DNA of 56,246 nt. Source: Macrostomum lignano (lineage: Eukaryota). The translations under genes were made by a program, and so were the position numbers. This document shows positions 9,987-11,750 of the stretch, in pieces. Numbering within the stretch: the first letter of the stretch is position 1; each line of letters begins with the position of its first letter. Location: the NCBI GenBank assembly GCA_002269645.1, contig NIVC01004186.1, positions 1 to 56,246 of the forward strand, read 5' to 3'. The notes under the pieces were generated by a model, which saw only the letters and a list, made by a program, of their open reading frames with translations, did no database searches and was not told where the DNA came from.

Positions 9987-10286
9987 CTATTGGTTGATAA
10001 TAGACCGGACAAAGTCCTCGTACCGGATCTGGCCCTCCCCGTCGCAGTCGGCCTCTTTAATCAACGCGTCGACCTCTTCGTCCGTGAGTCGCTCTCCGAG
10101 CTGAGTTAGCTGGTTGCGCAGCTCGGAGGCAGACACCATGCCGCTGTTCTGCTTGTCGAACACGCGGAACGCCTCGATGATGGCCTCTTCAGTGTCGCGG
10201 GGCTTCATCTTCTCGGCCATGAGCGTCATGAATGTGTTGAGCTCGAGTACACCAGTCAGCTCGGAGTCGATCTCTTCGATGTACTC
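9987..10286 (-). CDS. Divergent calmodulin-like exon (EF2-EF4), orphan duplicate of calmodulin exon 2; probable alternative terminal exon
   Basis: Open 300-nt frame [49 protein letters not shown]...FVRSIINQ*. Homology extends 19 codons upstream of the listed ATG, exactly to the phase-0 intron position of the neighbouring gene, and is preceded by AG (10288-10287). 52/99 identical to exon 2a by manual alignment. Confidence 0.8.
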
Positions 10287-10468
10287 CTTTTGTTTGGTTT
10301 ATTGAATGGCGAAGTAGTGTGTTATTGGCTTGAATTTTATTGTCGATACACCTAATACTGTAGGCTTAATTGTGCACACCCCTTCTCTTCCATGCTACTT
10401 ACAGTATTGCAACCAGTACAGGAGCGTACATCAAAGCTGCATGTATTGAAATACTGGTAGCATTGTAC

Positions 10469-10723
10469 CAAGGATCGGCAAACTATAGGTCATTTCATCT
10501 ATTGGGCCCTCGGGTATCGGCTATGGAGATCTATTCTCTCCCCTCTTCTCTATTCCCTCATCCCTATCTTCTCATCTCCTCTCTCTCTCATTCCACACCT
10601 CATCTCATCTTCTCTCCTCTCCCAGTATTCTTTCTCGTTTCCGCTCTTATCTACCCCCCAGCCACGAGCTACGAGCGTAGATTCTTAATCTGGCCCTTAA
10701 GGTAAAAATTTTGCCGACCCCTG
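10469..10723. mobile_element. hAT-type MITE (TIR family CAGGGGTCGGCAAA) with CT-rich interior
   Basis: Left caaggatcggcaaact, right ttttgccgacccctg. The right subterminal region is homologous to 15810-15875. The TSD is not clean. Confidence 0.65.
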
Positions 10724-11075
10724 TATTATTAGAAACCACGTTGTATAAATTAATATACATTTAATACATCAGGAATGTGTATATGAAATCAGCGTTGAAC
10801 TGAAAACATGCCTGAATTTAGATAAAACGCAATTCAGTCAATTTTGGCTATTTTATGTTTATTGGAACAATCGATATATTATAATTATTAAAGATATTAG
10901 TAGATAAAAATTAGAAGCGGGTCAAGGCTGCCAAAACGCAATTTATTGATTAGGAAAACAGGATTATCTGGTACAGCAAACAGAATTTAAAGATTTTATA
11001 TATAGCACAAAAATGTCAAGTCTTTTAGTTCATTTTCGGGCGCGATGATATGGCGGACGACACGATAGATCGAGT

Positions 11076-11750
11076 CTATTTGCTGGTCATCATCTTGACG
11101 AACTCCTCGTAGTTGATCTGACCGTCGCCATCCAGATCAGCCTCGCGGATCATCTCTTCAACCTCCTCGTCCGTGAGTTTCTCGCCCAGATTGGTCATCA
11201 CGTGGCGCAGCTCGGCAGCCGAGATGAAGCCGTTGCCGTCCTTGTCGAAGACGCGGAACGCCTCCCGGATCTCCTCCTCGCTGTCGGAGTCCTTCATCTT
11301 GCGCGCCATCATGGTGAGGAACTCCGGGAAGTCGATTGTGCCATTTCCATCCTGGTCAACCTCATTGATCATGTCCTACAATTGTGCAGGAAGAGGTGCA
11401 TGGGGCTAGATTATTCCAGACATCTGCTGCTGTGTCCGCTTAAATCTTGACAATAACATGAGGACATGTGTACAATGCAGGACACAATCGACTTCGCCGG
11501 AAATTCCTTTCCATGCACCACTACACGGACCCATTCTGCTCGCTCTATATTTTGTATGCATGCTTTCTTAACTAAGTTCCATAGATTGGAAAATTCTCAC
11601 CTGCAGCTCCGCCTCGGTGGGGTTCTGGCCCAGAGAGCGCATCACGGTGCCCAGCTCCTTGGTGGTGATGCAACCGTCTCCATCCTTATCGAACAGGCTG
11701 AATGCCTCCTTGAACTCGGCAATCTGGTCCTCTGTAAGCTGGTCAGCCAT
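11076..11750 (-). CDS. CaM: Calmodulin, 149 aa, two coding exons (11750-11601 and 11375-11076)
   Basis: [50 protein letters not shown]|[12 protein letters not shown]...[10 protein letters not shown]. Donor cag|gtgaga, acceptor ttgtag|gac. Four canonical EF loops. AATAAA at 10947-10942. Confidence 0.97.

Follow-up and report, generated by a model that had tools for sequence, protein, structure and literature searches.

The stretch of DNA analysed here in its entirety, a window of 56 kb, is derived from contig NIVC01004186.1 of the Macrostomum lignano assembly Mlig_3_7 (GCA_002269645.1) and harbours a calmodulin gene on its minus strand. The coding part of exon 1 (11601..11750, minus strand, with the ATG at 11750) specifies residues 1-50, from MADQ to EAELQ, and contains EF-hand 1, in whose loop codon 27 (11670-11672) puts a Cys at position 7 in place of the Thr usual in calmodulins. 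An element read from the sequence about 93 nt 5' of the calmodulin ATG, TATAAAAG (11843..11850, minus strand), is a candidate TATA box and likely serves the calmodulin gene as such. About 200 nt upstream of TATAAAAG, at ~12057-12090 on the minus strand, roughly 9 C are followed by a 10-nt spacer and roughly 10 G, possibly a hairpin or G-rich element. The 3' edge of exon 1 reads CAG|GTGAGA, and its donor GTGAG matches the cis-donor motif of M. lignano, GT[G/A]AG (PMC8629364).

Exon 1 is separated by an intron of 225 nt (11376..11600, minus strand; GT..AG, 44% GC) from the terminal exon 2a (11076..11375, minus strand), which is bounded by TAG|GAC and a TAG stop and encodes residues 51-149, corresponding to EF2-EF4 of a canonical-type calmodulin. 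Two AATAAA hexamers located 129 and 213 nt past the 2a stop (10858..10947, minus strand) are candidate proximal poly(A) signals. At a distance of 789 nt, measured from the 2a stop to the next acceptor, lies a further terminal exon, 2b (9987..10286, minus strand), bounded by AAG|GAG and a TAG stop and comprising 99 codons plus the stop for the degenerate EF-hands EF2', EF3' and EF4'. Both second exons span 300 nt including the stop, begin in phase 0 and directly follow an AG; the coordinates and translations given in the initial annotation proved exact, and its description of the 2a-2b interval as AT-rich agrees with the 38% GC measured there. The GenBank coding sequence that joins exon 1 to 2b implies an intron of 1314 nt (10287..11600, minus strand) enclosing exon 2a together with its candidate poly(A) signals. 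The first canonical AATAAA past 2b is found 479 nt downstream of the 2b stop (9503..9508, minus strand) and may act as the distal poly(A) signal, a non-canonical signal closer to the stop being possible, and the next annotated gene downstream of 2b is convergent.

The MITE that had been assigned to the 2a-2b interval is a weak call, as it has no more than two 14-nt arms that are 86% complementary (10469-10482 and 10710-10723) and flank a purine-rich, minisatellite-like stretch; a single partial copy of 70% identity lies at 15665-15871. The window as a whole is unusually dense in minisatellites (36 TRF rows at a score of at least 200), including a 21-mer repeated 90 times (44324-46210), a 24-mer repeated 56 times (14337-15709) and further arrays at, among others, 106-1156, 3617-4711, 12934-13626, 35060-35957 and 42718-43430. 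The GA-rich arrays among them resemble the purine-rich stretch between 2a and 2b.

Exons 2a and 2b are tandem homologous exons of equal length and phase, each provided with its own stop. They align without a gap and share 194 of 300 nucleotides and 52 of 99 residues, the latter figure being that of the initial annotation, and the tblastn match (E=1e-32) is far beyond chance. As the longest identical run between them measures 14 nt, the 2b copy is old, and a recent conversion of one exon by the other was rejected. A single upstream exon with a single donor is common to both. The earlier statement that no additional exon 1 lies between 2a and 2b holds for the entire window, since tblastn with exon 1 as the query retrieved no second exon-1-like sequence from any part of the 56 kb, and a private first exon for 2b was accordingly rejected.

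The two acceptors differ in quality. That of 2b reads CAAAAG|G and has a pyrimidine fraction of 0.40 over the 20 nt preceding the AG, versus 0.70 for 2a, which bears out the earlier caveat that it is A-rich and weak; the acceptor motif enriched in M. lignano is CAG (PMC8629364). An in-frame TAA sits 5 codons upstream of 10286, so that no acceptor farther upstream keeps the frame open, and the sole in-frame acceptors are the AG at 10288-10287 and, 3 bases on, a GAG. Together these form a NAGNAG acceptor (AAG|GAG, 10284-10289), in which use of the second AG would drop one Glu codon in frame. An ATG of its own is absent from the 5' end of 2b.

The protein predicted from exons 1 and 2a comprises 149 aa, shares 93-95% identity with numerous animal calmodulins and matches PROSITE PS00018 in all four loops, several unusual residues such as Cys27 notwithstanding; by its four canonical loops and very high identity it is a calmodulin. 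The protein predicted from exons 1 and 2b is 68% identical to it and departs from it in the part encoded by 2b. PS00018 is matched by EF1 only and fails in the other three of the four loops, in agreement with the earlier claim that canonical Ca2+ sites had been lost from 2b, and the loop sequences and the K116R replacement listed at that time were verified in the translation. EF2' lacks ligands at loop positions 3, 5 and 12, EF3' carries Gln at loop position 3, and in EF4' loop positions 9 and 12 are occupied by Arg and Asp, respectively. Of the ten calmodulin Met positions, six are replaced (M52Y, M72L, M110L, M125L, M145S and M146I), among them all those of the C-lobe (110, 125, 145 and 146), and the trimethyl-lysine position is the one altered by K116R. 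With EF1 alone canonical and the Met surface replaced, the chimera is calmodulin-like rather than a calmodulin.

The EF-hand fold itself is recognisable in the chimera. Pfam EF-hand_7 (PF13499) matches two stretches of it with E=1.7e-30 and 2b alone with E=7.7e-18, its nearest sequences in the PDB are calmodulins, and an AlphaFold model displays four helix-loop-helix units with paired short strands, at a mean pLDDT of 67 and from a shallow alignment. EF-hands function as pairs, and since 2b begins at EF2', an EF1 partner is needed, which counts for the joining of exon 1 to 2b. Judged from its residues, the chimera would bind Ca2+ at most weakly outside EF1 and would present an altered target surface. 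The likeliest reading is of a calmodulin-like subunit that is Ca2+-poor or Ca2+-independent rather than a Ca2+ switch. The chimera might act as a light-chain-like or apo-CaM-like binder, in keeping with the resemblance to CALML4 and light chains that had been suggested for it.

The sequence properties of 2b are those of a maintained coding exon. Across its 100 codons there are neither in-frame stops nor indels, and neutral simulations, in which 2a was mutated at random with 70, 87 or 106 substitutions, left the frame open with probabilities of 0.094, 0.060 and 0.034, respectively. A BLOSUM62 score as high as the observed 283 arose in 0.6% of the simulations with 70 substitutions and never with 87 or 106, so that the replacements are conservative at P<=0.006 over all substitution loads tried; the plain amino-acid identity of 2b to 2a was unexceptional against the simulations at 70 substitutions. 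Hydrophobic core positions are kept or conservatively swapped among I, V and L, with F69, F90 and F93 retained. The GC3 of 2b amounts to 0.81, close to that of exon 1 (0.80) and 2a (0.84), within flanks of 0.38 GC, whereas neutral decay to flank composition predicts 0.64-0.71 (P<=0.003). Open frame, missing indels, conservative replacements and retained GC3 all support the earlier claim of selection on 2b.

The onset of coding-type composition coincides with the acceptor. Even the initial 20 codons of 2b show a GC3 of 0.75 (P=9e-4 versus flank composition), which, combined with the upstream TAA, indicates that translation must enter at the acceptor. Translation of 2b only from an internal ATG (an 80-aa ORF, 9987-10229) is disfavoured, because the 20 codons upstream of that ATG have coding-type GC3 and align gaplessly to 2a. 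The pairwise Nei-Gojobori comparison of 2a and 2b yields dN 0.41 and dS 0.88, a ratio of about 0.47 that is by itself no evidence of constraint, since 2a is almost canonical, nearly all amino-acid change therefore falls on the 2b side, and the ratio of the 2b lineage could approach 1.

That last possibility is one of the points in favour of reading 2b as a functionless relic, now decaying, that a partial tandem duplication left behind, the exon 1-2b junction reflecting rare splicing noise or an artefact of assembly or annotation and yielding no stable protein. The weak acceptor, the distance to a canonical poly(A) signal, the loss of canonical ligands from three loops and the visibly imperfect annotation of the locus point in the same direction, as does the failure to find a 2b orthologue in the collections searched. 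A relic would, however, hardly be expected to keep its frame open (P 0.03-0.09) and free of indels at 35% nucleotide divergence, to accept conservative replacements while keeping its hydrophobic core, or to retain a GC3 of 0.81 within DNA of 38% GC from precisely the acceptor onwards, and this explanation is regarded as quite improbable.

Public annotation bears directly on how 2b is reached. GenBank PAA48296.1 (hypothetical protein BOX15_Mlig013024g1, 149 aa) corresponds exactly to exon 1 joined to 2b, and its gene range is exactly 9987..11750. For the Mlig_3_7 annotation, which involved no ab initio prediction, TACO combined StringTie assemblies of RNA-seq data with mapped de novo transcripts, TBONE split the result at spliced leader (SL) and poly(A) sites located by experiment, and TransDecoder called the coding sequences (PMC5730564). 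As the annotation is transcript-derived and the coding sequence skips 2a, a transcript model joining 11601 to 10286 is implied, and the 11601->10286 junction is thus supported, indirectly, at the level of third-party transcript-derived annotation. The exon 1-2a junction is present in UniProt/WormBase models and by homology only. The GenBank entry supports the earlier proposal that exon 1 is spliced to either terminal exon.

The annotation of the locus is nevertheless incomplete, as an exact look-up in a collection of 15 billion proteins did not retrieve the canonical product encoded by exons 1 and 2a. Its absence possibly results from the isoform-fraction filter of 0.75 applied by the annotation pipeline, its removal of transcripts overlapping repeats, or multi-mapping. 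GenBank thus holds only the chimera, under the name 'hypothetical protein', and UniProt holds two chained models of 241 and 506 aa, so that none of the three database models (PAA48296.1, A0A1I8IYR6 and A0A1I8IZG5) represents the canonical product. The gene ID Mlig013024 did not occur in the full-text literature searched or in the available supplements of PMC5730564 and PMC5816591, and a full-text search on M. lignano and calmodulin returned no description of this locus.

The two UniProt/WormBase models, A0A1I8IYR6 (241 aa) and A0A1I8IZG5 (506 aa), are based on another assembly, are both named 'Calmodulin' and use the same 2b acceptor, which they reach by way of an F|GTCAAG donor inside 2a (11097). 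As independent models, they count in favour of the use of this acceptor. They raise the alternative that 2b is appended to 2a through this donor (TTC|GTCAAG, 7 codons before the stop) to give a product of 241 aa with seven EF-hands, as in A0A1I8IYR6, and the in-frame model recorded for that other assembly is what speaks for it. The donor GTCAA does not match GT[G/A]AG, however, and the number of EF-hands would be odd. Moreover, the sister model A0A1I8IZG5 uses F|GTC once more at the end of 2b (10008) and then continues over 7194-1442 of the minus strand, antisense to a neighbouring JmjC-type gene annotated on the plus strand. The repetition of this device identifies stop-avoiding ab initio chaining as the origin of both models, which are probably artefacts, and a genuine read-through from 2a into 2b appears very remote.

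Another route to 2b, without exon 1, would be SL trans-splicing. The M. lignano SL, CGGTCTCTTACTGCGAAGACTCAATTTATTGCATG, is 35 nt long and ends in TTGCATG, about 30% of the genes are trans-spliced, operons are present, and 18% of the predicted operons start with a non-trans-spliced gene (PMC8629364). Exon 2b might accordingly be a separate downstream cistron in an operon-like arrangement, with the SL added at 10286 after cleavage and polyadenylation behind 2a, whereby the ATG ending the leader would supply the start of a 100-aa protein, M followed by EYIEE...INQ. Joined at 10286, this ATG would be in phase with 2b, which has no 5' ATG of its own, and SL-borne AUGs that create ORFs are a recognised phenomenon in flatworms (PMC9851317). 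The spacing fits as well, the 2a poly(A) signals lying ~570-660 nt from the acceptor, below the 1-kb operon threshold, and the 789 nt between 2a stop and acceptor on the same strand falling within the repeat-adjusted distance of <1 kb by which operons are defined.

Several observations stand against this route. The acceptor CAAAAG does not match the trans-acceptor motif [T/C]TNCAG (PMC8629364), and a good cis donor is available upstream of 2b. A pipeline that cuts at measured SL sites still reports exons 1 and 2b as one coding sequence, meaning that no SL peak made 2b a separate gene, and no stand-alone 2b protein is on record in the protein collection. A product with three EF-hands would also leave EF2' without a partner. 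Trans-splicing onto 2b is considered unlikely, although it is the leading alternative to the preferred explanation, and it could coexist with cis-splicing from exon 1, as the two routes do not exclude each other.

Relatives of 2b were sought in protein and metagenome collections. A word-indexed protein search returned the protein itself together with ordinary calmodulin-like matches of at most 61% identity, and an exhaustive HMMER search gave top identities of at most 51%, a result that is not decisive because a chimera would fall inside calmodulin clusters formed at 50% identity. Metagenome contigs contained only distant EF-hand loci of 23-47% identity, which are uninformative here.

Few eukaryotic proteins are as conserved as calmodulin, which animals usually diversify via separate calmodulin-like genes. 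CALML3-6 of mammals, Androcam of Drosophila and the CaM-like proteins of Fasciola are such separate-gene products, and proteins of this type frequently act as light chains for unconventional myosins. The chimera shares with them an identity to calmodulin of ~50-70%, degenerate Ca2+ loops and altered methionine surfaces, whereas they possess first exons and promoters of their own and 2b has its promoter, 5' UTR and EF1 in common with the calmodulin-type product. A further parallel is offered by the myosin essential light chains MYL6 (LC17a/b, vertebrates) and Drosophila Mlc1, calmodulin-superfamily EF-hand genes with alternative 3' coding exons, in which the C-terminus is likewise varied by the choice of 3' exon. 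Their isoforms differ in a few C-terminal residues through exon inclusion or skipping, while a duplicated exon replaces EF2-EF4 in the present gene.

Mutually exclusive terminal exons duplicated in tandem are known, for instance from Drosophila pip and PGRP-LC (PMC9013439). As in those genes, tandem homologous 3' exons each supply a complete ending between which one upstream donor chooses; unlike them, the calmodulin locus has two copies only, and these encode two-thirds of a very small and normally near-invariant protein. In being a start-less exon in frame and at operon distance, 2b resembles flatworm mRNAs that use the 3' AUG of the leader, (PMC9851317), and it differs from them in its misfitting acceptor motif and in the public transcript-based model that ties it to exon 1. 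A search of the full-text literature found no calmodulin with such a tandem exon duplication. Duplicated alternative terminal exons are thus already known, and their use in calmodulin is judged to be unusual and undescribed in the literature searched.

The explanation favoured here, and considered probable, is that of a calmodulin gene with two coding exons whose terminal exon underwent an ancient tandem duplication and now exists as two alternative last exons. Its observed basis comprises the exon anatomy, the homology of 2a and 2b, the coding-type maintenance of 2b, the degeneration of its loops and the exon 1-2b model in public annotation. One promoter upstream of exon 1 would drive transcription for both outcomes. 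In the proximal choice, the donor at 11601 would be joined to the strong acceptor at 11375 and polyadenylation would take place past 2a, giving the canonical-type calmodulin. In the distal choice, the polymerase would continue past the poly(A) site of 2a and the donor at 11601 would instead be joined to the weak acceptor at 10286, giving a product of 149 aa in which the EF1 half-lobe of calmodulin is fused to the diverged EF2'-EF4'. What we infer in this scheme is how the junctions are used and regulated, where polyadenylation occurs, and the translation and biochemical behaviour of both products. Points against it are the pyrimidine-poor acceptor, with AAG versus the enriched CAG, the 479 nt that separate the first AATAAA from the end of 2b, the canonical product missing from the protein collection, a dN/dS of the 2b lineage that could approach 1, the failure of the searches to turn up a 2b orthologue, and the moderate pLDDT of the chimera.

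Whether the two outcomes also amount to a metazoan calmodulin locus that yields, by last-exon choice, both a sensor of Ca2+ and a calmodulin-like subunit insensitive to it, possibly in different cell types, is evenly balanced. If so, the choice of the last exon would swap two-thirds of the protein and place a Ca2+ sensor and its Ca2+-insensitive relative under one promoter. As M. lignano is amenable to transgenesis and RNAi, isoform-specific tests are feasible. The locus would then constitute a natural experiment on the contribution of EF1 when it is partnered with a dead EF2.
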